A program made the translations under genes and the position numbers. A stretch of 29,517 nt of DNA from Paraphysomonas bandaiensis. Lineage: Eukaryota; Protista; Chrysophyceae. Location: NCBI GenBank assembly GCA_965644295.1, contig CBFFRP010000665.1:1-29517 (forward strand), given 5' to 3'. This document shows, piece by piece, positions 1-25,300 of this stretch (within the stretch, counting starts at the first letter, position 1; the number at the start of each line of letters is the position of its first letter). Under the pieces are notes generated by a model. The model did not search any database, was not told the DNA's origin, and saw only the letters and a program-made list of their open reading frames with translations.

Positions 1-385
1 TCCACTCCCTGTGCTCGGCTTTTCTCAGAGACTCACGATGTGTCTGAGGCACTGTCGACTCTTCCGCTTTGACATCCACACTGGTGCCTCCTGTAAAAGG
101 TCACTCATCATCTCATCACTCAAATGATGGTTGTCCTAACACCGACACATTCGTTACCGTCCTTGGAGTTCTTGCGCGTTTGCCGTGCGGATGAGGATTC
201 TCGGCAGGGTCCCTTCCCCCGAAGGTAATGCTGAGTCAGCCTGGGAGCTGCACCTGCCCACTTTCCGACTGCTGTGGCACCACTCGCTGATGCCGCCGTC
301 ACGGTTGTCCAGTAACTCTGGCCCTAACCACCCTCTGCGCAAGATCCTCTGTCATCTTCTTGATGTCAGCAATATGAATAGAGGT

Positions 386-1211
386 TTATCCTCCGCGAAC
401 CTGGTTGCCAGTAACCAACGACCGGTATCCCACAATAAGTCCCTTCCTTATCACCACTCTGTTAGTCTTGTATAGCAGACCATCCTCATGGTGCTTTCCG
501 ATAAGATACTCAAACTCACCCAGTTGACGAGCCTCGGGATCTATAGCCACTTGAGCCTCCTCCAGCTCTCTATAATAATCCTGAGACCTCTCAGGTACCG
601 ATTCATCAAATAATACATGTACAGAGTGTACTACAGTGCTCCCCACTAGCACCTTGTATCCTTTTCGATCAGCTGGATACCCTATGAAATAACCTGTCAT
701 TGCTTTGTCCTCCCAGTCCTTCCTCCTGTCGGCCTTGGGTGTTACTTACATATACTTTGCACCCCCATTCCATAGCCACGATAGGCTGGGAACGCTCCCC
801 CCTGGGACACACTCATATGGAGACATCCATCCTTGCCACATCGAGTTAGCATTCGTCGCACAATGTAACATGCAGTTTGATAAGCATCAGACCAGAACGA
901 CTTTGGAAGTCAGATGCCGTCAACATCGTCAGTGTCATCTCCCCAATTGTTCGGAATTTCCTCTCAGACACCGCGTTGAGCTCTGGCGTGTCTCATTATT
1001 TGTATAAAACACCCCGAGTCCCATATCGCTGCAACAGATACTCTCTTATCTGCTGACTAATAAGTTCGGATCCTCCATCGGCATGATACTCCACTATACG
1101 GTTCCACCCCTCGTACTTCACTAAGTGGATGTCACTTGCAAGTGTCGTAGACATTTGAACACCTCCTCTCCACTTCCCGAGTCCTCAATCCATATTCCCA
1201 TATCATCTTTG
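386..1211 (-). pseudogene. Copia integrase remnant (frameshifted core plus C-terminal SH3-like region)
   Basis: Minus-strand peptides KMIWEYGLRTR, GEEVFKCLRHL, IVEYHADGGSELISQQIREYL and GYFIGYPADRKGYKVLVGSTVVHSVHVLFDE, which match Copia integrase motifs (xSDxGxE; GxFxGY...GY...SxxVxFDE) across frameshifts. Confidence 0.85.
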
Positions 1212-2506
1212 GTACTCATCCCTTGCTTGACCCTAATGACCCAGAGGATGCTGTAATGTATTCTTCCGTGAGCTTCTTGACATCACCCAGTAGGCTACCG
1301 AGGCCTCCCTCCTGGACAACCCCTACCTACTACCTACTACCAGTCAGGAGAGCCCCAGTACTCATCCCTTGCTTGACCCTAATGACCCAGTGGATGCTGT
1401 AATGTATTCTTCCGTGAGCTTCTTGACATCACCCAGTAGGCTACCGAGGCCTCCCTCCTGGACAACCCCTACCTACTACCTACTACCAGTCAGGAGAGCC
1501 CCAGTACTCATCCCTTGCTTGACCCTAATGACCCAGTGGATGCTGTAATGTATTCTTCCGTGAGCTTCTTGACATCACCCAGTAGGCTACCGAGGCCTCC
1601 CTCCTGGACAACCCCTACCTACTACCTACTACCAGTCAGGAGAGCCCCAGTACTCATCCCTTGCTTGACCCTAATGACCCAGTGGATGCTGTAATGTATT
1701 CTTCCGTGAGCTTCTTGACATCACCCAGTAGGCTACCGAGGCCTCCCTCCTGGACAACCCCTACCTACTACCTACTACCAGTCAGGAGAGCCCCAGTACT
1801 CATCCCTTGCTTGACCCTAATGACCCAGTGGATGCTGTAATGTATTCTTCCGTGAGCTTCTTGACATCACCCAGTAGGCTACCGAGGCCTCCCTCCTGGA
1901 CAACCCCTACCTACTACCTACTACCAGTCAGGAGAGCCCCAGTACTCATCCCTTGCTTGACCCTAATGACCCAGTGGATGCTGTAATGTATTCTTCCGTG
2001 AACTTCTTGACATCACCCAGTAGGCTACCGAGGCCTCCCTCCTGGACAACCCCTACCTACTACCTACTACCAGTCAGGAGAGCCCCAGTACTCATCCCTT
2101 GCTTGACCCTAATGACCCAGTGGATGCTGTAATGTATTCTTCCGTGAGCTTCTTGACATCACCCAGTAGGCTACCGAGGCCTCCCTCCTGGACAACCCCT
2201 ACCTACTACCTACTACCAGTTAGGAGAGCCCCAGTACTCATCCCTTGCTTGACCCTAATGACCCAGAGGATGCTGTAATGTATTCTTCCGTGAGCTTCTT
2301 GACATCACCCAGTAGGCTACCGAGGCCTCCCTCCTGGACAACCCCTACCTACTACCTACTACCAGTCAGGAGAGCCCCAGTACTCATCCCTTGCTTGACC
2401 CTAATGACCCAGTGGATGCTGTAATGTATTCTTCCGTGAGCTTCTTGACATCACCCAGTAGGCTACCGAGGCCTCCCTCCTGGACAACCCCTACCTACTA
2501 CCTACT
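1212..2506. repeat. 146-bp tandem repeat array 1 (~8.9 units; unit = 72-bp S + 74-bp T)
   Basis: GTACTCATCCC recurs at 1212, 1358, 1504, 1650, 1796, 1942, 2088, 2234 and 2380; units are near-identical; the array ends inside T after CCTACT. Confidence 0.97.
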
Positions 2507-3621
2507 GTGGTAAGCGTACGGGTGTTGACTAGTGTGTCCACCCTGGGTGAGGTAAACCTTCTCCATGATGAGGAGATTGTCAATCTGTGTGATGACAGTG
2601 ACTGTATCTAATAACTAACATAATATGTCTAATTGTAGAGAGACCAAGGCTATGTCTGCTGGCATGCAGGAACTGGTGTGGCTTCGGGGGGTGTTGGTCG
2701 AACTGGGACTTCGATTGTACGAACCCACTCCATTCTTCCTGACAGCCAGGGTGCTCGCGACTTAGCGTTGAAGTTGAATGATGTGGTGTGATTGATCTCA
2801 GCGACGAGGATAGGAAATCATACGTGCTAATTATCAGAGACAGAAGATCATTCAGATGTGTTGTCTATGGTGAGGCTTGCTGAAACGTCGGAGTCATACG
2901 TCCACCGGTTTGTCCTCTGAGGTTTTTGGTGGTTGCGTATCCGTCAGTTATGTCTCGTGATATGAAGAGTCTATCTACAGCTTTGAATTGAGAGGGAGTG
3001 TTGAGTTTTGCCGTTAGAGCAATTAAAAGCTGTAATTCTACCCATCAGTGATGTCTCGTGATGTTGTGAAGATTCAATGTACAACTGATGAGGTTTTGGT
3101 GGTTGCATATCCGTCAGTCATGACTCGTGGTTTGACAAATCAATGTACATCTTTGAATTGAGAGGGAGTGTTGAGTTTTGCTGTTTGAGCAATTAAAAGC
3201 TGTAATTCTAAGATATTGGAATTATGACGGTTACTGGAGAATACAGTAGTGGTTAACTGTATTATGAGAAGTGATATCATGACGATGTAAGATCGTACTA
3301 GAAATGAGTGGTAGTAGAGATAACGTGATATATTGCTTATTATATTTATTATAATCTTCTCTTATCTTAACTTGATTCATGAGTGAATACACGTGCAGTT
3401 ATCTTAGTAATCATCCAATTGTGTCATAACTTGACAATAACTTGACATGGTAGCGGATGGTAGTTGGAAACAACTGCTGAAGTTTGACCATTGGAATGTA
3501 ACTGGACAGAGAAGCAGGAGTCCATACGACTTGTAGGGCTGGAGGAACGATCAGTGATGACGATACTGCTCTGTACAGTAGAAACATACATAGAAAATAA
3601 AATCAGTACTATTTTTACAAA
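2506..3621 (+). repeat. Inverted duplicate of 9065-10180 (RNase H remnant, PPT, 268-bp LTR 3169-3436, TSD, old LTR end, PBS 3448-3460)
   Basis: Reverse complement of 9065-10180 (paired coordinates sum to 12686); one substitution noticed (GGTCAAAC vs GGTCACAC). Confidence 0.95.
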
Positions 3622-3632
3622 CCCCTACCTCC

Positions 3633-6223
3633 TGATTCGGGGCTCGTAGAAGTAGAGGCTTTCCCAAGTTCATTCTTCATCGTAATGTCACTGCTCCTCC
3701 TTTTCTCATTGTTACGTTTTTTCTTTCTTATCTTTTTCTGAGTACTTTTAGTCACTTTGTAAGTACTCCTCATTTCCATACATATTAAGCGATGGATAGC
3801 AGGGAGCCTTGGAACTAAGACACACAAAAGGAGTTCAAGTAGTGCATCAAACATCTCCTCCTCATAGTTGTCTAGCCCTATTCCCTTTGAGTCAACAACT
3901 TGCCCAGTGATCCCAAAGAGTAGTGAAAAACCAAGACTGCTAAGTCTCTCAAAAATTAGCGCTGCGACTGCCGGGTGACAGAGGCCTGGCAAAGGATCGC
4001 AAGACACATCAACAATTACGAAGCTGTTGTAGTAAGAGGGAATCTTTTTGCTTCGGGAACTCCTCTTGTCCCATCTATTCTGCCGTTTTCCCTTAGCTTG
4101 TTTCTCGCTGCCACAAGCAGGACTTATATTCTCGTGGCTGGGACAACACACATCTCTTGATAACTCGGCAGCTTCGGGAAATAATGCCTTTTGCCAGCGT
4201 GAAAAATTGCGGACATCCAGTGGGCTTTCCCCATTGCTTGAACTCATGCCCAAACTTTCTCGCATTTCTTTCTCTGCTTCCAGAAGTGACAAAGTCGTGA
4301 GTTCCTATCGCAACATCATGAGCTTCGAATACACCCCATGTATCATTCTGATACATGCCTGTATAATATGAGCCCACAATCTAATGTGCTTGTTCTTCAC
4401 ACTTGGATGCATCGCCAAAAGGCACCACATTACTGTATACAATGTTAGAGTGTCGTTTCAGCACAAGCGATAAAATATTTACTACTGCACATACATGCTC
4501 TAAGAGTTCTTGAGTTGCATGGATGGTTAAAAAAAGTTCTCCAATTATGGTCCTCGTTAAGCAAGGGCAATAGGTGGGAGTCCACAGTTTGACGTGGAGG
4601 TCGGATGCTTCGCCCGTATATCCTTGCCGCCTCCAGAGCAATCTGAGACAAAGGCAATGACAATGCTATAGCCACGAGAGTATAAACACTAAAGGAGAAC
4701 CATTGCAAAGGGGATCATCTCATCTGATTCGGGGTCGAATCCAGGGTCGGTATAACCTCCGTCTTCATCGTCGTCGCCTCCTTCTTTGCTCTCCCCATTA
4801 GATCTCCTGCCTGTTGCAGCTCTCCTAGCAGGACCTTCTTCAGATACGTTGGATGTAATAATTCCCATTTCACTACTACTGGGGTTGTCGTTTGTAGACA
4901 TGAACGAGCTAATTTCCCACTGCACAGATACAAAGTGCTGTGAACACGGCGAGAATACAAATAAGCAACTGGCGCACCGATGAGGTCTTGAAATCTCTTG
5001 AGAGCAACTCCAGTAGTGGAAACACTCCGTGTTGTCTAATCAAAACACACCATCCTTCCCTATAAAATACACCAAGTTCAAGTATTCAGATACAACATGC
5101 ATAGCACGGAGTCTTACGAGTGTGTGAGTCCATAAGAAGGTAGCAGAGAAGACTCGACACCCATAGCGTTACTCAGTAGCATTAACACATTCTGACATCG
5201 CTCAATTCTTGCCGAGTCCCAATTCTCATCCAAAGGTATTTCATCTGGACCAACTGACAATCTACTGTCGTTTCCTTCAGAAGGGTCATGTGCCCAGTAG
5301 CTGTTATCCGAGCCTCCACAGGCACTGTCCTCATCTTCGTCAATATCAGACTCATCATCGCTCGCACTAGAGCTGCTGCTTCCACTGCTTGAGTCGTCGC
5401 TAGTACTAGAACCGTTGCTACCACTGCTTGTGTCAGTGCTTGCAATGGTTATTGACTTCGTATCATCATCGTTTTCAGTCATATGGTCGTTTACACTGGA
5501 ACAATTTATTAGATATCCGTATATCACATCATACATGCACCTTCAATATATAGGTTGGTGGTCACTACATTCACACGTACCCGAGTTGACTAAACATGCG
5601 ACAGCGTCTCCTAATGCAATTAATTCGGCACGCCACCAGTTGTGCTTCAACGGCTTGTAGAGGACTGTCTCCGGCGTCGTCTAAACTTCGTAGAGAGTCC
5701 TCACAACGAGTTAAGAGCAAACGAACGACATCTATAAGCCCTCGTGTTGAGGCTAGGTGCAAGCAAGAGAGGGGGCTTCAGCTGCTGCACGCCATTCGCT
5801 ACCTCTTTCGCCATCTAGAAGTAGCAGCAGCAATGAAACAATTTCGCTCTCTTCGCAGCCAGAGCAGAGCATGTCATGGACTGCTCTGGGATACATGCTC
5901 GGGGTGATGTGCTCTGCCAAAATCGCAAGTATTTCCGTGTTTTTCACAGATAATGCGATACTCCAAGGAGTCTCCCCAGAAGAAGAAGCAGTGGATACAT
6001 CCGCCCCATGCTCGAGGAGTGATTTCATGACAGCCGTCTCTTGAAGTTCGATCGCTCTCATGAGAAACGTAACGCCAGTGAGTGTCTGTATGGGCGTATT
6101 GATGTCTTCAGCAGACATATTCGGAATAACACTCAGACACCCATTTCGGTCCCCTGAAGTGGCGAGATGAGCGAGATGAGCCACTGCAGGAGGTAAGCTT
6201 GTGTTTCCAGCCGAGAGATCCAT
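3633..6223 (-). pseudogene. 3'-truncated copy of the ankyrin-HECT gene (no HECT domain)
   Basis: Copy of 14225-16815 with a copy-specific G-run frameshift near 5771; the frame runs through the junction (...TSPESGGRGL*) and stops at 3615. Confidence 0.85.
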
Positions 6224-6739
6224 ACAGAGATACGGACACTCAGATATACGCAGATGATAAGATGATCGTGTGGGCAATGGGCCGTAGAGTGGTTGTGAAC
6301 GGTTACGAGTGCATGTGTGATGTTGCAGATATGGACTCGTCGCTCTGTCTCTCTGCATGTCTGGCCGGGCTGCTCTGCATGTGTATGCGTGTACTGGGCT
6401 GCTGGGTGTATGTATATGTGTGTCCTACACTGTATAGACATTCGACTGTACACCATACAGCGTCCTGTAGGAATATTCCTACATGTATACCTATACCAGG
6501 CATATGTATATGGACCACATCGAGACATCTACACGTCTACGAAGACATGGACAACTCAGACTGCTGTATCTCGTGTATATACATATACATACGTAGTATA
6601 ATACAACGTATTCAAAGAACTGTACATATATATATACCAATACAGTATACAGTACATATACATATACAGAGTACTACGTACTGTATGCTGTGTATGGCTC
6701 TATGCAGTATATGTATACAGTACTCCGTATGCTATCTAT

Positions 6740-7222
6740 GTCTATCTATATGTATGTATAAGTATATGGCTATATGCTGTATGCAGTATATGTAGGCAGT
6801 ATATGTATGTATATGTATGTATATGTATATGGCTATATGCTGTATGCAGTATATGTATGCAGCAGTATATGTATGTATATGTATATGTATATGGCTATAT
6901 GCTGTATGCAGTATATGTATGCAGTATATGTATGTATATGTATGTATATGTATATGGCTATATGCTGTATGCAGTATATGTATGCAGCAGTATATGTATG
7001 TATATGTATATGGCTATATGGCTATATGCTGTATGCAGTATATGTATGTATATGTATATGGCTATATGCTGTATGCAGTATATGTATGTATATGTATATG
7101 GCTATATGCTGTATGCAGTATATGTATGTATATGTATATGGCTATATGCTGTATGCAGTATATGTATGCAGTATATGTATGTATATGTATGCAGCAGTAT
7201 ATGTATGTATATGTATATGGCT
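6740..7222. repeat. TATG-rich ~40-bp minisatellite (duplicated copy)
   Basis: Variants of CTGTATGCAGTATATGTATGTATATGTATATGGCTATATG; boundaries approximate. Confidence 0.9.
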
Positions 7223-7293
7223 GGCATGCATATATTAACATCCACAGCTCCCTCTACCGATATACATATACACCATCCTACTCATAGCCAGGG

Positions 7294-7824
7294 ATGTCTC
7301 TGCAGGACCAGTTATTGCAGATCCTGCACAGCAGTGAAGATGGCGTGTCTGATAATGATCTGAAGCAGCAGTTTGGAGACAGCTACAGCAGCCTCGTGCC
7401 CATAATAAACGAGCTGCTTCGGACCAATCACATCCAGCTATTCCTTCAGGGGGGCGTACTATTCTATCGGGCGATAGAAGAGGCCATTGCAGCTAAGCTA
7501 GAGGGACTGGGGTGAGCTAACGGGCCGCGTGTGTGTTGTATGGCTCATATATGTATGTATGTGTATCACAGACCGGAGCAGATGCTGGTATATCAGATAT
7601 GTGAGAAGGCGGGTAACAGGTACTGATACAGAAGAGATGTTGATGATCTGTGTGATGTGCTTATGTGGGGTGCAGAGGTATATGGACGCGTGATATAAAA
7701 ATTGCTACGAACTGCCCGCAGCACACTCTCACAAAGACACTGAAAATTCTTGAACAACGAAATCTCATCAAGTCGGTGCGGTCTGTGACAAGTAAATCAA
7801 AGAAACTGTACATGCTCTACGACA
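7294..7824 (+). pseudogene. POLR3F: Truncated RPC6/POLR3F copy (exons 1-2 and most of exon 3) fused to the 146-bp array
   Basis: Matches 18006-18534 up to KKLYMLYD, then reads into repeat sequence and stops at 8057. Confidence 0.88.
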
Positions 7825-8675
7825 ACCCCTACCTACTACCTACTACTACCAGTCAGGAGAGCCCCAGTACTCATCCCTTGCTTGACCCTAATGACCCAGT
7901 GGATGCTGTAATGTATTCTTCCGTGAGCTTCTTGACATCACCCAGTAGGCTACCGAGGCCTCCCTCCTGGACAACCCCTACCTACTACCTACTACCAGTC
8001 AGGAGAGCCCCAGTACTCATCCCTTGCTTGACCCTAATGACCCAGTGGATGCTGTAATGTATTCTTCCGTGAGCTTCTTGACATCACCCAGTAGGCTACC
8101 GAGGCCTCCCTCCTGGACAACCCCTACCTACTACCTACTACCAGTCAGGAGAGCCCCAGTACTCATCCCTTGCTTGACCCTAATGACCCAGTGGATGCTG
8201 TAATGTATTCTTCCGTGAGCTTCTTGACATCACCCAGTAGGCTACCGAGGCCTCCCTCCTGGACAACCCCTACCTACTACCTACTACCAGTCAGGAGAGC
8301 CCCAGTACTCATCCCTTGCTTGACCCTAATGACCCAGTGGATGCTGTAATGTATTCTTCCGTGAGCTTCTTGACATCACCCAGTAGGCTACCGAGGCCTC
8401 CCTCCTGGACAACCCCTACCTACTACCTACTACCAGTCAGGAGAGCCCCAGTACTCATCCCTTGCTTGACCCTAATGACCCAGAGGATGCTGTAATGTAT
8501 TCTTCCGTGAGCTTCTTGACATCACCCAGTAGGCTACCGAGGCCTCCCTCCTGGACAACCCCTACCTACTACCTACTACCTACTACCAGTCAGGAGAGCC
8601 CCAGTACTCATCCCTTGCTTGACCCTAATGACCCAGAGGATGCTGTAATGTATTCTTCCGTGAGCTTCTTGACAT
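7821..8675. repeat. 146-bp tandem repeat array 2 (partial T, then 6 S and 5 full T)
   Basis: S starts at 7867, 8013, 8159, 8305, 8451 and 8604 (last interval 153 bp from an extra CCTACTA); ends at ...CTTCTTGACAT 8675. Confidence 0.97.
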
Positions 8676-9225
8676 TGTATGCATTATGGTATGGTCCGAT
8701 TAAATTGTTGAACACTTCAACCTGTTGAGCATAATTTATTGCATTCCATCGCATGAGAGGAAACACTCTCATCAAATGTAGGCATAATTGATGCGACTCT
8801 TGATCACTTGCACTCTCATCGATAACACTGCACCCCCATCCACACAATCTAGACACATTATTGAATCACCGCGCTCACACTCCATCCACATGCGATAATA
8901 GTAGCCATCTTTCCTCTTATTATGCGGGCCTCTTAGAGGGTTCATACATTCATTAACCATAATACACTCCAACATAATATCTGACGGATCCAAGTTAGTC
9001 ATCTAGTCTCTAAATTTACTTTTTCGTTTTTTTCGTTTTGTAAATTCGCCTTAATACCCCCGTTTTTGTAAAAATAGTACTGATTTTATTTTCTATGTAT
9101 GTTTCTACTGTACAGAGCAGTATCGTCATCACTGATCGTTCCTCCAGCCCTACAAGTCGTATGGACTCCTGCTTCTCTGTCCAGTTACATTCCAATGGTC
9201 ACACTTCAGCAGTTGTTTCCAACTA

Positions 9226-9238
9226 CCATCCGCTACCA
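9226..9238 (-). promoter_or_regulatory. Primer-binding site of the older element (TGGTAGCGGATGG), initiator-Met tRNA type
   Basis: Directly follows LTR end ...TTGACA; begins TGGTAGC like known tRNA-iMet PBSs. The same sequence is at 11035-11047 and 3448-3460. Confidence 0.75.
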
Positions 9239-9249
9239 TGTCAAGTTAT

Positions 9250-11315
9250 TGTCAAGTTATGACACAATTGGATGATTACTAAGATAACTGCACGTGTATT
9301 CACTCATGAATCAAGTTAAGATAAGAGAAGATTATAATAAATATAATAAGCAATATATCACGTTATCTCTACTACCACTCATTTCTAGTACGATCTTACA
9401 TCGTCATGATATCACTTCTCATAATACAGTTAACCACTACTGTATTCTCCAGTAACCGTCATAATTCCAATATCTTAGAATTACAGCTTTTAATTGCTCA
9501 AACAGCAAAACTCAACACTCCCTCTCAATTCAAAGATGTACATTGATTTGTCAAACCACGAGTCATGACTGACGGATATGCAACCACCAAAACCTCATCA
9601 GTTGTACATTGAATCTTCACAACATCACGAGACATCACTGATGGGTAGAATTACAGCTTTTAATTGCTCTAACGGCAAAACTCAACACTCCCTCTCAATT
9701 CAAAGCTGTAGATAGACTCTTCATATCACGAGACATAACTGACGGATACGCAACCACCAAAAACCTCAGAGGACAAACCGGTGGACGTATGACTCCGACG
9801 TTTCAGCAAGCCTCACCATAGACAACACATCTGAATGATCTTCTGTCTCTGATAATTAGCACGTATGATTTCCTATCCTCGTCGCTGAGATCAATCACAC
9901 CACATCATTCAACTTCAACGCTAAGTCGCGAGCACCCTGGCTGTCAGGAAGAATGGAGTGGGTTCGTACAATCGAAGTCCCAGTTCGACCAACACCCCCC
10001 GAAGCCACACCAGTTCCTGCATGCCAGCAGACATAGCCTTGGTCTCTCTACAATTAGACATATTATGTTAGTTATTAGATACAGTCACTGTCATCACACA
10101 GATTGACAATCTCCTCATCATGGAGAAGGTTTACCTCACCCAGGGTGGACACACTAGTCAACACCCGTACGCTTACCACACAAGTCTCCGTAGACTCAGC
10201 AGGTACAGTCTCACAGACAAGATTCACGCTGATCTCACTAGACTTAGTATACACAGTATCACTAGGCAAAGTACGAAGGGACATTCTCTTCCCTGGAATC
10301 TCATCCGCCGTTTAGACTTATTGGGTGCACCACCCAAAGCCGGCGTGTAGATGAAGATGCACCCCTTTTTTTCATCACAAAAACGAGGTTTTTATAGTAC
10401 AGCCGTCTCACTAGATACAGCACCCGCACTTCTCTCTGGCAAAATACGAAGGGACATTCTCTTCCCTGGAATCTCATCCGCCGTATAGACTTATTGTGTG
10501 TTCCCCACGAAGCCGGCGTAGATGAAGACCCACCCCTCTTGTCGTCACAAGAACGAGGTTTTTAGTACAGCCGGCGGTTATACACGTCTATATCGATTAT
10601 ACGATGGCCGAACTCTGCAACAGCTCGAACCAGTGGGTCACTCTTGACAACAACCGCCCCAAGCTCATCGTCGATAGCACTCCATCTATCTCATGAGGAA
10701 CTACTCTCATCATAATATATAACACAATGGACACGACTCCTCATCACTCGCACCCCCATCAACACAATCAGACACATTACTGAATCACCGTGCTTACACT
10801 CTGCACATGGGTAGACATCATTCTGATAATGATATGGGGTCTCTCCAGAGGGTTCATACATCATCAATCCAGTCTACTTTTTCTGTCATGTTCGATTGAA
10901 AACCCCAATTTTCATAAATAATACTGGTTTTATATCCTATATACTGTATGTTTCTACTGTACACAGCAGTATCACTCCTGCTTCTCTATCCAGTTTCATT
11001 CCAATGGTCACACTTCAGCAGTTGCTTCTAACTACCATCCGCTACCATGTCAAGTTATGACACAATTGGATGATTACTAAGATAACTGCACGTGTATTCA
11101 CTCATGAATCAAGTTAAGATAAGAGAAGATTATAATAAATATAATAAGCAATATATCACGCTATCTCTACTACCACTCATTTCTAGTACGATCTTACATC
11201 GTCATGATATCACTTCTCATAATACAGTTAACCACTACTGTATTCTCCAGTAACCGTCATAATTCCAATATCTTAGAATTACAGCTTTTAATTGCTCAAA
11301 CAGCAAAACTCAACA
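9250..11315 (-). mobile_element. Young non-autonomous Copia-derived LTR retrotransposon, 2,066 bp
   Basis: 268-bp LTRs TGTTGAG...TTGACA at 11315-11048 and 9517-9250 with one mismatch seen; PBS 11035-11047; PPT GAGAGGGAG from 9518; 5-bp TSD GTTAT at 9245-9249 and 11316-11320; no long ORF. Confidence 0.93.
9913..10046 (-). pseudogene. Copia RNase H remnant inside the young element
   Basis: ETKAMSAGMQELVWLRGVLVELGLRLYEPTPFF, frameshift, DSQGARDLALK; matches the Copia RNase H ExxWLRxLLxELG...PT...DxQxA motif. Confidence 0.8.
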
Positions 11316-11629
11316 GTTATGACACAATTGGATGATTTACTAAGTTAACTGGACGTGTATTCACTCATTAAGCTTATTATAAAATTATAATCAATATCTC
11401 TTCTCATCAATTTCATGTTATCTCTACGTCCAATCGTTTCTCGTATGATCTTACATATCGTCACTATCTTGTATGATCACTATATTGTATTCAGTGTCAT
11501 TACTACAGTAGCCATCATGTTGTTAGTTCTCATAATACTGTTAACCACTACTGTATTCTTCGACTAACGGTCATAATTCCAATGCCTTAGAATTACAGTT
11601 TTTAATCGCTCCAACAGCAGAACTCAACA
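11316..11629 (-). mobile_element. Diverged 5' LTR of the older host element (last 6 nt displaced to 9239-9244)
   Basis: Starts TGTTGAGTTCTGCTGTTGGAGCG on the minus strand; clearly homologous to the 268-bp LTR, with substitutions and extra sequence. Confidence 0.88.
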
Positions 11630-11847
11630 TAATACTGTCTGATAAACCGATGTTCATCAGATGTTATACATTAATGTGATTTTTTTAGAATAATTCTTTC
11701 TTGGAAGTACGTTCTGTGCAACAAAGTAAGGTTAAGGTTTACGTGTAGAGCAATTTTAACAAGTAAGAAGTACACTTTACTCTTACTGCCGCATTAATTA
11801 TCAACTAAAAGTCCTCTACAATCTACAATACCACTATTATACTATTT

Positions 11848-14800
11848 TTAAGGGCGGTCGAACCCAATACAACTGAACTGAAGTGCGTTCTTGATGGCCC
11901 GCTTCATCTGATATAAAAATATTAAATCAAAAAGTACTACATATATAGTGACGTACTTCATCCAGTGTTTTGTACTCTGGTAGATATAAATGTTTGTCAC
12001 ATGTTTGAGCCTCTGGGAGAGAGTTTACCGGGTCAAATGTACTCCTCAGTGCAAGTGGCTTCTTTGACTCCATGCGAGATATAGTCATCTGATGTTGTAC
12101 ATAAAACGATCGTGAGTTAGTCATAACTTTTACAAGCACTAAACTTTACCTCCTCGTTATCATCTCCCCCGAAACCCCCACTGGGAGGCACACTGTTCCC
12201 TGTCCAGAAGAGCAAAAGGTTTCTCAAGTCCAAGTCACTCAGACTGTGCTCAAGCAAATGCCAGAAAAGTTTTATCACTCGGTGATTAGCGTGATAACCA
12301 TTACTATAAAGCACATGAATACGAAGACTTTCTACATCAATGCAACTATCCCCTTTCAAAAACACCCAATATGCTTGCTACTGAGGATATTCAGTAGATA
12401 CTGAGGTATAACCCGCAATAAGCCGGTACGTATCTCCCTCAGACTCGCTTCCATGCCTTGAGAGAGACTTCGGGCTCGACAGTAGAGGTTCACGTACTTC
12501 GCCTTGTTACTAGAGTCAACTTTAACTTGAGCCCCATCCTTCACGAGCTCCACATCCTGAGTGAGAAGGGATTGCGTACATACATCCCACACAAGTCTAG
12601 TACCGACAAATGTAAGATCCATTGCTTGTAAGTCATCATCACTTAGGTCGTTGAGAATAACACCTAAACTGCGACACGTTGATTCGTCGCTACCACAGAG
12701 CTCCTGCCACGTGATTGCTCCACTATAGTCACCATCTCTTGCTTGCCCTTTTGATCTCATGACCTGTTGGTCAAGTAGGATTTTCCATATGTAATGCGGC
12801 ATGCCCACTCCTATGGGGCAGCAGTTCCGTATGTAATATCCAATCAGAACTCCCACACATCTAAACATCGAGATTGCCATCTTTTGTGCTTGCTTTCGCC
12901 TCATCCTACCTTTATTTTTGGCACTGCTGCCGTCCTGTTCTGCACGCTGAACTAAGGGGGGATGATCCGTCTTCTCCATAATCCTTGCCACTACATCTGG
13001 CAAGTCAACAGGAACAACACATTCTGGGTGACTGTCTCCAGACGAACGGAAAAGTGGGAAAACAGTGGACAGAGGTACACTGCTGAAATGACCCCTTTGT
13101 TTCTTCTTTTTGTTAAACGACTGTCCCTGTCCACATTCCTTGTACGATGTCTCAGTTAAGGGCTCCTGTTTGAGTATTTGTCTCTCCCCTTCCACCATAT
13201 CCGTCAGAGATGTGGATGTGATAGGAGCGGTGTTGAAGAATACTCGGCACATTTCAAGAAATTCCTTTACTGGACCCGGACCTACTCCTGCCTCTCCCTC
13301 ATAGAGAATGGATAAATTGACTGCATGAAGGTTCTTGCTGTTGTCGAGAAGGAGTTGCTGTAGAACCGACTCAGCCCACACAGGCGGATCTGTAAACCGA
13401 TTTAGGTGTATCTCAAAGTCCTGATAGCGTTGCTCGGTGCTTGAGGAGTCTTCTAGCATTGCATCGTCTACTCCAGACTCCATCATATTCACCACATAGT
13501 CCAAGCGCTGACAGTCATCCAGCACCCAGGGTACTCGTAGGAGAAATGGCAAGTGGGAAGATAGAAGACCTTCCTCCGCAACGTCGGAGGTACTGTCTAC
13601 GAGACAAGCAATTCCGTCCTTTCTGGACTTACACAAATCCACGAACAAACTTGGCGTGTGAGCGATATGAGTGCCACCAGCGATATAGCGTAGTGCCAAG
13701 TCTGGACCATTCCTGGCGAGGGCACGGCGAGACCGTTTGTACTCATCAGGGGAGCTTTCAGAGACACGCTCAGATGCAGCCCCCATCATTAGACCCCAGC
13801 CTGATTCATGTGCAGTATTTCCGCCCCTCATCTTGTTGTCCCTTCTACCAACTGTCCTGATGCGCATTCCACTGGGAATCACTTTTGTGCAGTCATCTGC
13901 GACCATCCACACATACATGCCTCGGAGAAGTGTCGCGAGACGCCCCCCATCGTCAACAGATGCCATAAGCAGTGACAACATCTGGTCTACCCCGTGCCAC
14001 ACTCCCATGATCTCATTGCACAGTACTCCTGCTACGTATCTCAACAGCGAAACATTCACCTTAGCAGTTTTGTTCTTCTCCGCAGCCCTTCCACCTGGGA
14101 TTAGTGGGAATTCTCCCGGATAAAGTACTCCACCCTCTTGCAGCACAGTAGAAACGGAAACTACTCCCACTGATCGACGATACACGGAATGGTTTTCGAT
14201 AGGTTGTGCACATTCGACAGCCGTTGATTCGGGGCTCGTAGAAGTAGAGGCTTTCCCAAGTTCATTCTTCATCGTAATGTCACTGCTCCTCCTTTTCTCA
14301 TTGTTACGTTTTTTCTTTCTTATCTTTTTCTGAGTACTTTTAGTCACTTTGTAAGTACTCCTCATTTCCATACATATTAAGCGATGGATAGCAGGGAGCC
14401 TTGGAACTAAGACACACAAAAGGAGTTCAAGTAGTGCATCAAACATCTCCTCCTCATAGTTGTCTAGCCCTATTCCCTTTGAGTCAACAACTTGCCCAGT
14501 GATCCCAAAGAGTAGTGAAAAACCAAGACTGCTAAGTCTCTCAAAAATTAGCGCTGCGACTGCCGGGTGACAGAGGCCTGGCAAAGGATCGCAAGACACA
14601 TCAACAATTACGAAGCTGTTGTAGTAAGAGGGAATCTTTTGCTTCAGGAACTCCTCTTGTCCCATCTATTCTGCCGTTTTCCCTTAGCTTGTTTCTCGCT
14701 GCCACAAGCAGGACTTATATTCTCGTGGCTGGGACAACACACATCTCTTGATAACTCGGCAGCTTCGGGAAATAATGCCTTTTGCCAGCGTGAAAAATTG

Positions 14801-16815
14801 CGGACATCCAGTGGGCTTTCCCCATTGCTTGAACTCATGCCCAAACTTTCTCGCATTTCTTTCTCTGCTTCCAGAAGTGACAAAGTCGTGAGTTCCTATC
14901 GCAACATCATGAGCTTCGAATACACCCCATGTATCATTCTGATACATGCCTGTATAATATGAGCCCACAATCTAATGTGCTTGTTCTTCACACTTGGATG
15001 CATCGCCAAAAGGCACCACATTACTGTATACAATGTTAGAGTGTCGTTTCAGCACAAGCGATAAAATATTTACTACTGCACATACATGCTCTAAGAGTTC
15101 TTGAGTTGCATGGATGGTTAAAAAAAGTTCTCCAATTATGGTCCTCGTTAAGCAAGGGCAATAGGTGGGAGTCCACAGTTTGACGTGGAGGTCGGATGCT
15201 TCGCCCGTATATCCTTGCCGCCTCCAGAGCAATCTGAGACAAAGGCAATGACAATGCTATAGCCACGAGAGTATAAACACTAAAGGAGAACCATTGCAAA
15301 GGGGATCATCTCATCTGATTCGGGGTCGAATCCAGGGTCGGTATAACCTCCGTCTTCATCGTCGTCGCCTCCTTCTTTGCTCTCCCCATTAGATCTCCTG
15401 CCTGTTGCAGCTCTCCTAGCAGGACCTTCTTCAGATACGTTGGATGTAATAATTCCCATTTCACTACTACTGGGGTTGTCGTTTGTAGACATGAACGAGC
15501 TAATTTCCCACTGCACAGATACAAAGTGCTGTGAACACGGCGAGAATACAAATAAGCAACTGGCGCACCGATGAGGTCTTGAAATCTCTTGAGAGCAACT
15601 CCAGTAGTGGAAACACTCCGTGTTGTCTAATCAAAACACACCATCCTTCCCTATAAAATACACCAAGTTCAAGTATTCAGATACAACATGCATAGCACGG
15701 AGTCTTACGAGTGTGTGAGTCCATAAGAAGGTAGCAGAGAAGACTCGACACCCATAGCGTTACTCAGTAGCATTAACACATTCTGACATCGCTCAATTCT
15801 TGCCGAGTCCCAATTCTCATCCAAAGGTATTTCATCTGGACCAACTGACAATCTACTGTCGTTTCCTTCAGAAGGGTCATGTGCCCAGTAGCTGTTATCC
15901 GAGCCTCCACAGGCACTGTCCTCATCTTCGTCAATATCAGACTCATCATCGCTCGCACTAGAGCTGCTGCTTCCACTGCTTGAGTCGTCGCTAGTACTAG
16001 AACCGTTGCTACCACTGCTTGTGTCAGTGCTTGCAATGGTTATTGACTTCGTATCATCATCGTTTTCAGTCATATGGTCGTTTACACTGGAACAATTTAT
16101 TAGATATCCGTATATCACATCATACATGCACCTTCAATATATAGGTTGGTGGTCACTACATTCACACGTACCCGAGTTGACTAAACATGCGACAGCGTCT
16201 CCTAATGCAATTAATTCGGCACGCCACCAGTTGTGCTTCAACGGCTTGTAGAGGACTGTCTCCGGCGTCGTCTAAACTTCGTAGAGAGTCCTCACAACGA
16301 GTTAAGAGCAAACGAACGACATCTATAAGCCCTCGTGTTGAGGCTAGGTGCAAGCAAGAGAGGGGGGCTTCAGCTGCTGCACGCCATTCGCTACCTCTTT
16401 CGCCATCTAGAAGTAGCAGCAGCAATGAAACAATTTCGCTCTCTTCGCAGCCAGAGCAGAGCATGTCATGGACTGCTCTGGGATACATGCTCGGGGTGAT
16501 GTGCTCTGCCAAAATCGCAAGTATTTCCGTGTTTTTCACAGATAATGCGATACTCCAAGGAGTCTCCCCAGAAGAAGAAGCAGTGGATACATCCGCCCCA
16601 TGCTCGAGGAGTGATTTCATGACAGCCGTCTCTTGAAGTTCGATCGCTCTCATGAGAAACGTAACGCCAGTGAGTGTCTGTATGGGCGTATTGATGTCTT
16701 CAGCAGACATATTCGGAATAACACTCAGACACCCATTTCGGTCCCCTGAAGTGGCGAGATGAGCGAGATGAGCCACTGCAGGAGGTAAGCTTGTGTTTCC
16801 AGCCGAGAGATCCAT
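11848..16815 (-). CDS. Ankyrin-repeat + HECT-domain E3 ubiquitin ligase, multi-exon, with several frame disruptions (possible young pseudogene)
   Basis: N-terminal ankyrins (GVTFLMRA, GETPWSIA, CLHLASTRG, GDSPLQA); HECT motifs YEGEAGVGPGPVKEF, ELVKDGAQVKVDSSNKAKYV, FWTG, LPEAQTCDKHLYLPEY; terminal exon 11907-11848 ending GFDRP*. GT-AG introns near 11908-11954, 12089-12149, 15651-15707 and 16132-16170. Start at 16815 is inferred. Confidence 0.8.
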
Positions 16816-17329
16816 ACAGAGATACGGACACTCAGATATACGCAGATGATAAGATGATCGTGTGGGCAATGGGCCGTAGAGTGGTTGTGAACGGTTACGA
16901 GTGCATGTGTGATGTTGCAGATATGGACTCGTCGCTCTGTCTCTCTGCATGTCTGGCCGGGCTGCTCTGCATGTGTATGCGTGTACTGGGCTGCTGGGTA
17001 TGTATATGTGTGTCCTACACTGTATAGACATTCGACTGTACACCATACAGCGTCCTGTAGGAATATTCCTACATGTATACCTATACCAGGCATATGTATA
17101 TGGACCACATCGAGACATCTACACGTCTACGAAGACATGGACAACTCAGACTGCTGTATCTCGTGTATATACATATACATACGTAGTATAATACAACGTA
17201 TTCAAAGAACTGTACATATATATATACCAATACAGTATACAGTACATATACATATACAGAGTACTACGTACTGTATGCTGTGTATGGCTCTATGCAGTAT
17301 ATGTATACAGTACTCCGTATGCTATCTAT

Positions 17330-17935
17330 GTCTATCTATATGTATGTATAAGTATATGGCTATATGCTGTATGCAGTATATGTAGGCAGTATATGTATGT
17401 ATATGTATGTATATGTATATGGCTATATGCTGTATGCAGTATATGTATGCAGCAGTATATGTATGTATATGTATATGGCTATATGCTGTATGCAGTATAT
17501 GTAGGCAGTATATGTATGTATATGTATGTATATGTATATGGCTATATGCTGTATGCAGTATATGTATGCAGCAGTATATGTATGTATATGTATATGGCTA
17601 TATGGCTATATGCTGTATGCAGTATATGTATGTATATGTATATGGCTATATGCTGTATGCAGTATATGTATGTATATGTATATGGCTATATGGCTATATG
17701 CTGTATGCAGTATATGTATGTATATGTATATGGCTATATGCTGTATGCAGTATATGTATGTATATGTATATGGCTATATGCTGTATGCAGTATATGTATG
17801 TATATGTATATGGCTATATGCTGTATGCAGTATATGTATGTATATGTATATGGCTATATGCTGTATGCAGTATATGTATGCAGTATATGTATGTATATGT
17901 ATGCAGCAGTATATGTATGTATATGTATATGGCTG
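17330..17935. repeat. TATG-rich 40-bp minisatellite in the divergent HECT/RPC6 intergenic region
   Basis: Exact 40-bp periodicity at 17701, 17741, 17781 and 17821, with indel variants elsewhere. Confidence 0.92.
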
Positions 17936-18005
17936 GCATGCATATATTAACATCCACAGCTCCCTCTACCGATATACATATACACCATCCTACTCATAGC
18001 CAGGG

Positions 18006-19138
18006 ATGTCTCTGCAGGACCAGTTATTGCAGATCCTGCACAGCAGTGAAGATGGCGTGTCTGATAATGATCTGAAGCAGCAGTTTGGAGACAGCTACAG
18101 CAGCCTCGTGCCCATAATAAACGAGCTGCTTCGGACCAATCACATCCAGCTATTCCTTCAGGGGGGCGTTCTATTCTATCGGGCGATAGAAGAGGCCATT
18201 GCAGCTAAGCTAGAGGGACTGGGGTGAGCTAACGGGCCGCGTGTGTGTTGTATGGCTCATATGTATGTATGTGTATCACAGACCGGAGCAGATGCTGGTA
18301 TATCAGATATGTGAGAAGGCGGGTAACAGGTACTGATACAGAAGAGATGTTGATGATCTGTGTGATGTGCTTATGTGGGGTGCAGAGGTATATGGACGCG
18401 TGATATAAAAATTGCTACGAACTGCCCGCAGCACACTCTCACAAAGACACTGAAAATTCTTGAACAACGAAATCTCATCAAGTCGGTGCGGTCTGTGACA
18501 AGTAAATCAAAGAAACTGTACATGCTCTACGACACGGTGCCAGCTAAGGATATTACTGGTGGGCCTTGGTACACTGATCAGGTGACCGTATTTTGTTGTC
18601 GACAAGGCGATATGATTGATGATAATGACAGGAGTTCGATCATGAGTTTGTAGACGAACTGGCACGATTCATAGTACAATTTGTGAGTAGTGAGGGCATG
18701 GCAAGTGTCAGTGATATTAGTGCGAAAGTCAGAATTAGCGGTATATCTAAGGTAAATTCTGCTGTGCATGGTGTGCGAAGTTTTGACAGTTTTGTAGATC
18801 GAGTTGTCAGGGGACGAGATCGATCTCGTTCTTCAGACCTTGGTATTTGATGGCAAACTCGAAGAAGTAAAGCATGCAGTGGTGGCATTAACGGGTCAGG
18901 GCGGGAAAATGTACAAGGTATAATCCTATTGTCGGAATGATAAGTTTCATATTTTTTCTAGGTATCAGCACCTATACATCCACCCAACCACTATACAGCT
19001 GTACCATGTGGAGTATGTCCTGTGTATGAGCAGTGCCACGATGGTGGAGTGATTTCCCCACAGTCTTGTGTGTACATGTCACAGTGGTTGCAGATGTCGG
19101 CTGAGGAAGGTGTGTCGCCTATAGAAGACCTGTTTTAG
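18006..19138 (+). CDS. POLR3F: RNA polymerase III subunit RPC6 (C34/RPC39), 6 exons, ~292 aa
   Basis: Exons 18006-18223, 18282-18329, 18386-18581, 18632-18751, 18798-18917 and 18962-19138 splice in frame; motifs AGNRGIWTRDIK, KKLYMLYD..P...ITGGPWY, and the C-terminal Cys cluster PCGVCPVYEQCHDGGVISPQSC. Confidence 0.95.
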
Positions 19139-22317: not shown

Positions 22318-25300
22318 ATGAGCACCTGGGTGGAGGAACTAAATGAATTTCAGAGCGGATCGGACAAACAGTTCGGCGCTATGGAGACTGGCGGAGGCAT
22401 GAGGAGGTGTGTCTGTATCTCTGCACTGCATGCGTCTCTGCCCTTATCATCCGTCACAGCACATTTGTTAAGCCGAAGCCGTCCCGCAAAGAGACTCTAA
22501 AGGCGGAGCTCAAGCTGTTGGAGTGGCATAAACTTGCGAACGACGCGGCTCTTAAGGTACATATCACGCGATCTTATGTGCTGTGTGTTGGGGGTTGTTA
22601 GGAGATATGTATGATATGCTATGCTGTGTGTTGCGGGTTGTTAAGAGATATGTATGATATGCTATGCTGTGTGTTGGGGGTTGTTAAGAGATATGTATGA
22701 TATGCTATGCTGTGTGTTGGGGGTTGTTAAGAGATATGTATGATATGCTATGCTGTGTGTTGCGGGTTGTTAGGAGATATGTATGATATGCTATGCTGTG
22801 TGTTGGGGGTTGTTAAGAGATATGTATCACGCGATATGCTATGCTGTGTGTTGGGGGTTGTTAAGAGATATGTATGATATGATATGCTGTGTGTTGGGGG
22901 TTGTTAAGAGATATGTATGATGTGATATGCTGTGTGTTGCGGGTTGTTAGGAGATATGTATGATATGCTATGCTGTGTGTTGGGGGTTGTTAGGAGATAT
23001 GTATGATATGCTATGCTGTGTGTTGGGGGTTGTTAGGAGATATGTATCACGCGATCTTATGTGCTGTGTGTTGGGGGTTGTTAAGAGATATGTATGATAT
23101 GATATGCTGTGTGTTGGGGGTTGTTAGGAGATATGTATGATATGCTATGCTGTGTGTTGCGGGTTGTTAGGAGATATGTATGATATGCTATGCTGTGTGT
23201 TGGGGGTTGTTAGGAGATATGTATGATATGATATGGTGTGTGTTGCGGGTTGTTAGGAGATATGTATGATATGCTATGCTGTGTGTTGGGGGTTGTTAGG
23301 AGATATGTATGATATGATATGGTGTATGTTGCGGGTTGTTAGGAGATATGTATGATATGCTATGCTGTGTGTTGGGGGTTGTTAAGAGATATGTATGATA
23401 TGCTATGCTGTGTGTTGGGGGTTGTTAGGAGATATGTATGATATGCTATGCTGTGTGTTGGGGGTTGTTAAGAGATATGTATGATATGCTATGCTGTGTT
23501 TTGGGGGTTGTTAAGATATATGTATGATATGCTATGCTGTGTGTTGGGGGTTGTTAAGAGATATGTATGATATGCTATGCTGTGTGTTGCGGGTTGTTAA
23601 GAGATATGTATGATATGATATGCTGTGTGTTGGGGGTTGTTAAGAGATATGTATCACGCGATCTTATGTGCTGTGTGTTGGGGGTTGTTAAGAGATATGT
23701 ATGATATGATATGGTGTGTGTTGCGGGTTGTTAGGAGATATGTATGATATGCTATGCTGTGTGTTGGGGGTTGTTAGGAGATATGTATGATATGATATGG
23801 TCTGTGTTGGGGGTTGTTAGGAGATATGTATGATATGCTATGCTGTGTGTTGCGGGTTGTTAGGAGATATGTATGATATGCTATGCTGTGTGTTGGGGGT
23901 TGTTAAGAGATATGTATGATATGCTATGCTGTGTGTTGGGGGTTGTTAAGAGATATGTATGATATGCTATGCTGTGTGTTGAGGGTTGTTAGGAGATATG
24001 TATGATATGCTATGCTGTGTGTTGGGGGTTGTTAAGAGATATGTATCACGCGATCTTATGTGCTGTGTGTTGGGGGTTGTTAAGAGATATGTATGATATG
24101 ATATGGTGTGTGTTGCGGGTTGTTAGGAGATATGTATGATATGCTATGCTGTGTGTTGGGGGTTGTTAGGAGATATGTATGATATGATATGCTGTGTGTT
24201 GGGGGTTGTTAGGAGATATGTATCACGCGATCTTATGTGCTGTGTGTTGGGGGTTGTTAAGAGATATGTATGATATGATATGCTGTGTGTTGGGGGTTGT
24301 TAGGAGATATGTATCACGCGATCTTATGTGCTGTGTGTTGGGGGTTGTTAAGAGATATGTATGATATGATATGCTGTGTGTTGGGGGTTGTTAAGAGATA
24401 TGTATGATATGATATGGTGTGTGTTGGGGGTTGTTAGGAGATATGTATCACGCGATCTTATGTGCTGTGTGTTGGGGGTTGTTAAGAGATATGTATGATA
24501 TGATATGGTGTGTGTTGGGGGTTGTTAGGAGATATGTATGATATGATATGCTGTGTGTTGGGGGTTGTTAAGAGATATGTATCACGCGATCTTATGTGCT
24601 GTGTGTTGGGGGTTGTTAGGAGATATGTATCACGCGATCTTATGTGCTGTGTGTTGGGGGTTGTTAAGAGATATGTATGATATGATATGCTGTGTGTTGG
24701 GGGTTGTTAAGAGATATGTATGATATGATATGGTGTGTGTTGGGGGTTGTTAGGAGATATGTATCACGCGATCTTATGTGCTGTGTGTTGGGGGTTGTTA
24801 AGAGATATGTATGATATGATATGCTGTGTGTTGGGGGTTGTTAGGAGATATGTATGATCTTATGTGCTGTGTGTTGGGGGTTGTTAAGAGATATGTATCA
24901 CGCGATCTTATGTGCTGTGTGTTGGGGGTTGTTAGGAGATATGTATCACGCGATCTTATGTGCTGTGTGTTGGGGGTTGTTAAGAGATATGTATGATATG
25001 ATATGCTGTGTGTTGGGGGTTGTTAGGAGATATGTATCACGCGATCTTATGTGCTGTGTGTTGGGGGTTGTTAGGAGATATGTATCACGCGATCTTATGT
25101 GCTGTGTGTTGGGGGTTGTTAAGATATATGTATCACGCGATCTTATGTGCTGTGTGTTGGGGGTTGTTAAGAGATATGTATGATATGATATGCTGTGTGT
25201 TGGGGGTTGTTAAGAGATATGTATGATATGATATGCTGTGTGTTGGGGGTTGTTAAGAGATATGTATGATATGATATGCTGTGTGTTGGGGGTTGTTAGG

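Follow-up and report, generated by a model that had tools for sequence, protein, structure and literature searches.

A composite templated insertion in a satellite array of Paraphysomonas bandaiensis, consistent with serial microhomology-mediated template switching

Template switching of the FoSTeS/MMBIR class is known to yield chains of switches like the one considered here, together with local amplification (PMC5120786, PMC13065848, PMC8421209). According to PMC13065848, MMEJ proteins initiate Pol-delta-dependent BIR. The locus compared here with these systems lies on contig CBFFRP010000665.1 (C665) of the chrysophyte Paraphysomonas bandaiensis (assembly GCA_965644295.1). The whole stretch of 29,517 nt that was analyzed is referred to as the window. 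A short array of a 146-bp satellite is split in it by a patch of 5.3 kb, copied from DNA a few kb away. The order of the elements is array 1, an inverted copy, a filler of 11 nt, a direct copy, and array 2 (Table 1). Both donors are intact and lie in cis within 11 kb of the insertion. A preliminary description had already proposed this layout, and all of its coordinates hold in the assembly (TRF, alignment).

Table 1. Positions of the composite insertion, its satellite arrays, and its donors in the window (contig C665)
Feature	Position	Strand	Basis or remark
Left flank, truncated high-copy Copia-like retrotransposon	1..1211	-	Cut at 1211, where the satellite begins
Array 1, 146-bp satellite, 8.9 units, phase 1 to phase 127	1212..2506	+	TRF, 99%
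Inverted copy of 9065-10180, interior of a high-copy repeat family	2506..3621	-	Near-identity to the neighboring copy
Filler CCCCTACCTCC, 11 nt	3622..3632	+	Comparison with satellite unit and donor flanks
Direct copy (D') of 14225-18534	3633..7824	+	9 differences from the donor; Pfam matches for genes
Array 2, 146-bp satellite, 5.8 units, phase 104 to phase 72	7821..8675	+	TRF, phase analysis
Segment R between array 2 and donor D; holds donor 1 and most of the HECT ORF	8676..14224	.	Repeat-family alignment, HECT domain match
Donor 1, intact	9065..10180	+	Sequence alignment
Donor 2 (D), intact	14225..18534	+	Sequence alignment; PF05158 across 18534

As a satellite, the 146-bp repeat is ordinary and present in high copy. 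Its entire unit is found across the genome in a single register, at ~20 loci, and its read depth was very high in four organisms. Previously, the unit had been divided into S (72 bp), by implication local host sequence, and T (74 bp), a separate entity that might be found elsewhere with different S partners. This division could not be maintained. T occurs at many loci, always with the same partner: all 135 T-only matches in the genome were located inside the same satellite at a spacing of 146 bp, and none of them had a partner other than S. For the 13-nt motif, 130 genome matches were obtained; among the 100 listed, all were in satellite contigs with 146-bp spacing. S and T are one satellite unit. 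With all T-only matches in the same satellite, the idea of an undescribed gene-capturing, array-building element had to be abandoned, and nothing at the locus points to a novel kind of element that moves or builds arrays.

Elsewhere in the assembly, satellite loci have unrelated flanks, their borders are spread over many phases, and fragments shorter than a unit (40-120 bp) occur in isolation. Borders cluster only weakly in the junction-motif part of the unit, with 14 of 37 in phases 104-136 compared with ~8.4 expected (P ~0.02, normal approximation; ~0.07 without the window's own two borders). The large arrays at contig ends all share one polarity (9/9), and one large array lies beyond a telomere tract of ~2.2 kb; the telomeric tract in C591 (CCCTAA/TTAGGG) extends over ~2.2 kb. 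T had been expected possibly at chromosome ends, but the telomeres consist of TTAGGG and not of the T motif. The satellite as a general chromosome end was rejected, as the assembly contains a single telomere-to-satellite junction. The array in C436 is interrupted by 1.9 kb. Repeat copies in C183 and C155 align colinearly with this interruption, which therefore probably reflects insertion of a transposon and not another patchwork. A box C/D snoRNA gene, repeated in tandem, was also considered as an identity of the unit. Visual inspection of the minus strand showed GUGAUGU ... CUGA with a possible flanking 7-bp stem. No support came from Rfam (no family match to the unit), from folding (z-score = -0.37), or from SSU rRNA and the 1.5 kb downstream of it, in which no stretch complementary over at least 10 nt was found.

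The two arrays of the window carry a characteristic variant, CAGTGG, in 7/9 units of array 1 and 4/6 units of array 2 (11/15 together). At ten other loci it was found in 0/72 units, and at C436 in 4/35. Given this concentration, array 1 is native to the locus and not a random chimeric partner. In addition, the first 24 nt of array 2 repeat the last 24 nt of array 1, an arrangement resembling a target duplication; the first unit of array 2 also shows a gain of 3 nt (TAC). By the common locus-specific variant and the 24-nt phase overlap, arrays 1 and 2 are one local array. Its flanks are two unrelated truncated transposons, not a host target. The left-flank family comprises at least 40 scored copies (154 candidates) with 94-95% identity, all of which align to 1211; beyond this position the copies continue with a common sequence missing at this locus. 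An ORF in this flank (386-700) encodes a retroviral polymerase SH3-like domain. Segment R begins inside a second, unrelated truncated repeat family, whose copies differ upstream of the point matching 8681. A model in which S is the host target and T a foreign module was rejected, since the flanks are truncated transposon families and the whole unit occurs genome-wide.

Both copied pieces are nearly identical to their donors. The inverted copy matches donor 1 at 1115/1116 bases, the single difference being at 3484, and shows at most 97% identity to any other member of its repeat family. D' differs from its donor by 3 substitutions (of ~4190 positions) and 6 indels, one of which is a microsatellite length difference of 128 bp. 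Substitution identity of at least 99.9% points to very young copies. Family homology continues uninterrupted across the donor breakpoint 10180; J1, the first junction, is therefore not at an element terminus, and a new transposon insertion into the array was rejected as its origin. Within D' lie an ankyrin-repeat gene and a TA-rich microsatellite, along with 440 nt from the 5' end of a HECT-domain ORF and the 5' portion of an RPC34 gene. The left border of donor 2 lies inside the HECT ORF (domain at 12356-14665, minus strand), and its right border inside an exon of the RNA polymerase III RPC34 gene (PF05158, E = 3e-25). In exact-protein look-ups, other assemblies had no match on record for the HECT and ankyrin ORFs or for the ORF that spans J3. 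That the donors were not spliced mRNA, as stated previously, still stands. The argument is weaker than it was made, because the main genes of the 4.2-kb piece are on the minus strand (the RPC34 5' part is on the plus strand) and a plus-strand transcript would keep their introns anyway.

Three junctions occur in cis within 5.3 kb, i.e. J1 (2506), J2 (3621/3633), and J3 (7824), and their letters are as first described. At J1, satellite phase 127 meets position 10180 with 1 nt (T) in common. At J2, the inverted piece ends in ACAAA, followed by the filler and then by position 14225; the microhomology is ~2 nt (AA), or 4 nt (ACAA) if a 1-nt slip is allowed. J3 has a 4-nt overlap, GACA. The filler is not present in the donor flanks (AACGG / GCCGT). 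Its first 9 nt equal satellite phase 109-117 (9/11 bases match the satellite), which is beyond chance (P = 0.0024 for a random 11-mer to have an exact match of at least 9 nt to the unit). A further satellite site, CCTCCTG at phase 97, is matched by the last bases of the filler if the TG that follows is included. ACA(A) forms the end of each captured piece, with (A)CCCCTACCT coming next; in the window, the motif recurs at two junctions only, J2 and J3. ACAA occurs once in the 146-bp unit, immediately 5' of CCCC. If re-annealing were random, landing twice within 1 nt of the same satellite position would be uncommon (~2% by phase alone, as a rough estimate), a point against the template-switching reading proposed below.

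Overall, the locus probably arose by serial microhomology-mediated template switching of the FoSTeS/MMBIR class. Features of this class found here include at least two junctions in cis, microhomology of a few nt, and a short templated insertion derived from nearby, as well as nearby templates, retained donors, and a mixture of direct and inverted pieces. Iterative Pol-theta/MMBIR-type synthesis, one of the mechanisms put forward in the preliminary description, fits all junction features. What we observed, and build on, is the structure itself, the junction letters, the filler origin, donors that are intact and in cis, copies nearly identical to them, and the local satellite variant common to both arrays. 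The starting state would be a satellite array of ~2.1 kb flanked by a truncated transposon on either side. A DNA strand growing during replication, or while a break was being repaired, would have left the array at phase 127. With 1 nt in common, it would have primed 7.7 kb further on, on the opposite strand, and run backwards for 1.1 kb (10180 to 9065). After detaching, it may have re-annealed on the satellite at ACAA and copied 9-11 nt. A second detachment would have been followed by 4.2 kb of forward synthesis (14225 to 18534). The strand would finally have returned to the satellite at GACA, at a phase 24 nt short of its departure point, and proceeded normally through array 2. The outcome would be a composite templated insertion of 5.3 kb with a 24-nt target duplication, or equally a local duplication with a period of 10.6 kb. 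The order of the switches, their occurrence in a single event, and the acting enzymes are the parts that we infer. The double return to ACAA/CCCC may indicate a favored landing or pause site, because the opposite strand of the C-rich satellite stretch (GACAACCCCTACC...) has eight G-runs of at least 2 bases.

Part of the structure might be an artefact of assembly or library preparation, such that the left 3.6 kb (transposon, array 1, inverted piece, and filler) are chimeric or mis-joined through the satellite and J1 and J2 do not exist in the organism. J1 and J2 are indeed confined to a single contig, C665, at 2.5-3.6 kb from its end. No contig spanning them was found among public read contigs (Logan contigs, which cannot bridge the repeats), and a scan of JGI metagenome contigs was blank for J2 as well as for the satellite. 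In run X1, D'-type letters alone were present at three diagnostic sites. The assembler evidently struggled here, as it also produced a redundant permuted contig, C613. On the other hand, the CAGTGG variant of array 1 speaks against a random partner. Both pieces come from the same 10-kb neighborhood, which is not expected of ligation chimeras, and the sequence is clean, with a single mismatch between inverted copy and donor. J3 is independently implied by C613, whose two ends abut exactly at this junction. We consider an artefact unlikely on balance. In the related organism B (run X5), a 7.5-kb contig crosses both donor borders unbranched and without J2 and J3; the junctions are therefore derived and not universal.

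C613 also bears on the number of events. It is exactly one period of 10,592 bp, permuted at J3 (beginning at window position 7823 and ending at 7821), and hence might reflect a circle or additional copies in tandem. Throughout its D part the sequence is that of D' (100%), and array and R match the window except for 2 homopolymer indels. In C613, R adjoins the D' version, an adjacency that is absent from the window; it does not follow from a single event and calls for a circle, a second haplotype, or additional tandem copies. Accordingly, a circle or tandem duplication of 10,592 bp (array 2, R, D) could have formed first through the GACA join at J3 and been amplified or re-integrated by homology, with J1 and J2 added at the left edge by a second rearrangement. 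Such a course of events requires more steps and gives no reason for J1 lying only 24 nt from J3 in satellite phase, and we regard it as rather improbable. Far less credible is an RT- or telomerase-like enzyme that copies a T RNA template between jumps, builds arrays, and captures genes. It would account for the same motif after both captured pieces, for the target duplication, and for an inverted-plus-direct layout reminiscent of twin priming, and unspliced minus-strand genes would be compatible with a plus-strand transcript. This part of the preliminary description is nevertheless unsupported: T never occurs apart from S, the telomeric TTAGGG repeats do not match T, poly(A) is absent, and the structure contains no RT gene, only bystander Copia-like fragments at the contig ends. 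Moreover, the pieces stem from non-adjacent genomic sites in cis, none more than 11 kb away, the satellite borders at other loci are spread over many phases, and the unit has no Rfam family. Capture by a transposon is equally hard to credit, whether by a Helitron, a Pack-MULE-like element, or aberrant transposition of the repeat in R. The captured DNA does include parts of genes together with their surroundings, and donor 1 is transposon sequence, but each piece begins and ends at an arbitrary point inside its donor, only the filler lies between the pieces, without terminal repeats or element-specific ends, and the satellite borders lack fixed ends.

If real, the locus represents a clean, base-resolved natural case of serial template switching in a little-studied protist lineage. 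The event would have duplicated one whole ankyrin-repeat gene and placed truncated HECT and RPC34 gene copies beside a satellite. The satellite itself is the major one of the genome, largely missing from the assembly and located at many contig breaks. This bears on any assessment of assembly quality and of structural variation in the species. A more far-reaching, highly doubtful scenario would have the C-rich stretch as a preferred pause or landing site and the arrays as recurrent anchors for break-induced template-switching amplification of neighboring genes. C613, with its 10,592-bp unit, would in that case represent an amplicon of this origin, either circular or in multiple copies, and the large arrays might be polar and associated with chromosome ends.

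Among known systems, Pol-theta-mediated end joining shares with this locus the 11-nt filler from break-adjacent sequence and microhomology of 2-4 nt, but not the kilobase-long copied pieces (1.1 and 4.2 kb). Typical Pol-theta inserts are far shorter than kilobases, and such pieces need a processive, BIR-like polymerase. Satellite spread by microhomology-mediated repair and eccDNA, as in Drosophila (Rsp-like/1.688, PMC7403614) and Tribolium (PMC11610590), resembles the ~20 loci with unrelated flanks, many border phases, and 40-120 bp fragments seen here. FoSTeS/MMBIR complex rearrangements, including complex insertions and chromoanasynthesis-like events (PMC5120786, PMC8421209, PMC13065848), have in common with it the junctions in cis, microhomology of 1-4 nt, a short templated insertion, inverted and direct nearby copies, copy gain, and intact donors. 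Unlike in those cases, which concern human disease or cancer, the home template here is a satellite array, to the same 5-nt spot of whose unit the strand would have returned twice, and the host is a free-living chrysophyte.

The window is a complete contig of a 62.5-Mb assembly with 669 contigs, and Copia-like retrotransposon sequence bounds it on both sides. All features listed in the preliminary description were recovered at the positions it had reported (see table). The direct piece differs from its donor (14225-18534) by three substitutions, two homopolymer indels, and four microsatellite indels, one of which comprises 128 bp. The donor has an ankyrin-repeat ORF of 318 aa; in the copy, a G run differing by 1 nt (window 5770 vs. 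16362) breaks it into two ORFs, of 201 and 131 aa, which is either a genuine frameshift or an error of the consensus at a homopolymer.

Satellite arrays and copied pieces
Feature	Position	Description	Basis
Array 1, 146-bp repeat	1212-2506	8.9 copies	Tandem Repeats Finder
Inverted piece	2506-3621	reverse complement of 9065-10180	sequence comparison; one difference, at 3484
Direct piece	3633-7824	direct copy of 14225-18534	sequence comparison
Array 2, 146-bp repeat	7821-8675	5.8 copies	Tandem Repeats Finder
Contig-end arrays	starts of C436, C451, C449, C387, C37, C591, C471; ends of C69, C598

The 146-bp unit belongs to a satellite that is dispersed and present in high copy number: searched against the genome it came from, a single unit matched at least 148 times, at about 20 loci. 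Its 74-bp part (T) alone matched 135 times, always within 146-bp arrays at 146-bp spacing, so T has no second partner. A 13-nt motif was matched 130 times (5 for the reversed control). Array boundaries fall at many positions within the unit (phases) and adjoin unrelated sequence; pieces of 40-120 bp also occur in isolation. In its other copies, the left transposon runs on past the position equivalent to 1211 with a shared sequence that this locus lacks, and the right flank begins within a different repeat family. Because the unit recurs genome-wide, T lacks another partner, and the flanks are two unrelated truncated families, the implied reading of the remaining 72 bp (S) as a host target and of T as a separate module is rejected. 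In Logan contigs from organisms under four different labels, the summed word depth, which does not equal copy number, was thousands-fold higher for the satellite than for the neighbouring gene region; with its fewer than 200 units, the assembly clearly contains just a small fraction of it. Lone satellite pieces of 40-80 bp within otherwise unrelated sequence (C12:73798-73837, C556:134-180, and C154:1358-1436) resemble filler DNA from old repair sites.

All nine arrays cut by a contig end had the same orientation, the unit's plus strand facing outward (chance P ~0.004), and mostly unrelated inner flanks. This suggests that the large arrays are terminal or palindromic rather than ordinary internal blocks. 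At C591:1-2332, 143 bp of satellite at the contig start abut ~2.2 kb of CCCTAA telomeric repeats, placing the satellite beyond the telomere tract. As this satellite-telomere junction is the sole one in the assembly and its 143-bp stretch contains small deletions, it may go back to one read that was noisy or chimeric. In C436, 1.9 kb (C436:195-2069; 3-nt border overlap, TAC) interrupt a 7-kb array; repeat copies in C183 and C155 are colinear with this stretch, which therefore looks like a transposon insertion. The window also carries a second, unrelated satellite (22579-26547; 43-bp unit, ~88 copies) whose plus strand is strongly enriched in G (GC skew reaching 0.76); its core, GGGGGTTGT, has 8 nt in common with the complement of the T motif, probably by chance.

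Junctions were read letter by letter against both donors and the satellite. At the first (J1, 2506), one T is common to both sides. At the second (J2, 3621/3633), ACAAA ends the inverted piece and is followed by 11 nt (3622-3632) found in neither donor flank; nucleotides 1-9 of this filler equal the satellite sequence immediately 3' of the unit's sole ACAA (P = 0.0024 for a match of at least 9 nt between a random 11-mer of window composition and the unit). At the third (J3, 7821-7824), GACA is common to both sides. Both re-entries into the satellite land at ACAA/CCCC, partly because of microhomology, ACAA occurring once and GACA twice per unit. A putative structural pause site is also possible, given eight G-runs of two or more bases on the opposite strand. 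Among 37 satellite borders, only weak clustering was seen in this part of the unit.

Both arrays are rich in a CAGTGG variant (seven of nine units in array 1, four of six in array 2), which was found in 0/72 units at ten other loci and in 4/35 units in C436. Array 1 ends at phase 127 and array 2 resumes at phase 104, so that a 24-nt stretch flanks the insert on both sides. In the simplest reading, an array of ~2.1 kb received an insert of 5.3 kb, with 24 nt of the target duplicated.

It is rather unlikely that the structure is an artefact. What favours such an explanation is that J1 and J2 were found in no other contig and lie 2.5-3.6 kb from the end of this one; the variant common to both arrays, the clean sequence, and the origin of both pieces from one neighbourhood argue against a random chimera. 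Independent sequence came from Logan contigs, which break at repeats, and none among the matches listed spanned a junction. JGI metagenome contigs scanned for J2 and for the satellite gave no matches. In organism B (run X5), one contig of 7.5 kb crosses both donor borders unbranched, with donor-type letters at two diagnostic sites; the locus is therefore unrearranged in organism B. The best-matching run, X1 (organism A), has solely copy-type letters at 4055, 6406, and 7458. At 7449, all X1 contigs have one base fewer than the window; the donor, matching the copy there, presumably has the same extra base, which points to a difference between strains or to a homopolymer error that is systematic in the assembly.

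J3 is implied by two contigs, since C613 (10,591 bp) begins at window 7823 and ends at 7821, and represents one exact copy-to-donor period (10,592 bp) permuted at this junction. Its array and the segment corresponding to 8676-14224 are identical to the window except for two homopolymer indels. The remainder is 100% the copy version of 14225-18534, giving an adjacency of the 8676-14224 segment to the copy that is missing from the window. C613 is a candidate circular or multi-copy amplicon; it may reflect at least one further tandem copy collapsed by the assembler, an extrachromosomal circle closed at J3, or a second haplotype. Its gene content comprises the ankyrin-repeat gene, the larger part of a HECT ORF, and the 5' portion of the RPC34 gene.

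The inverted piece is the interior of a high-copy repeat family, with 99.9% identity to the neighbouring copy and at most 97% to any other. J1 does not correspond to the terminus of an element, since homology to the family continues uninterrupted across the breakpoint in the donor. The direct piece is bordered on the left within the HECT-domain ORF and on the right within an RPC34 exon. Neither element-specific termini nor poly(A) were detected at the pieces, and between them lies the filler alone. The telomerase- or RT-templated element initially considered did not withstand the tests applied to it, and neither did transposon capture.

Microhomology-mediated serial template switching (FoSTeS/MMBIR), named in the preliminary description as an alternative, fits and passed where testable. 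Its signature lies in the combination of three junctions in cis, microhomology of 1-4 nt, a short insertion templated by adjacent sequence, and one inverted and one direct copy with intact donors within 11 kb. Such switching would have built the insertion, presumably in a single event, with the order of switches inferred. The kilobase length of the pieces argues for a processive BIR-like polymerase over Pol theta alone, in line with established knowledge and PMC13065848. PMC8421209, PMC5120786, and PMC13065848 tie FoSTeS/MMBIR to insertions that are templated or complex and to local amplification in one step. The locus behaves like a further example of an established class, the MMBIR/FoSTeS complex insertions, here placed within a satellite array. 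What it adds, modestly, is that the landing site recurs, that a 10.6-kb amplicon may exist, and that the large arrays share one polarity. The dispersed pattern of the 146-bp unit is similar to that of satellites in Drosophila (PMC7403614) and Tribolium (PMC11610590), for which microhomology-mediated repair and eccDNA have been proposed as routes.
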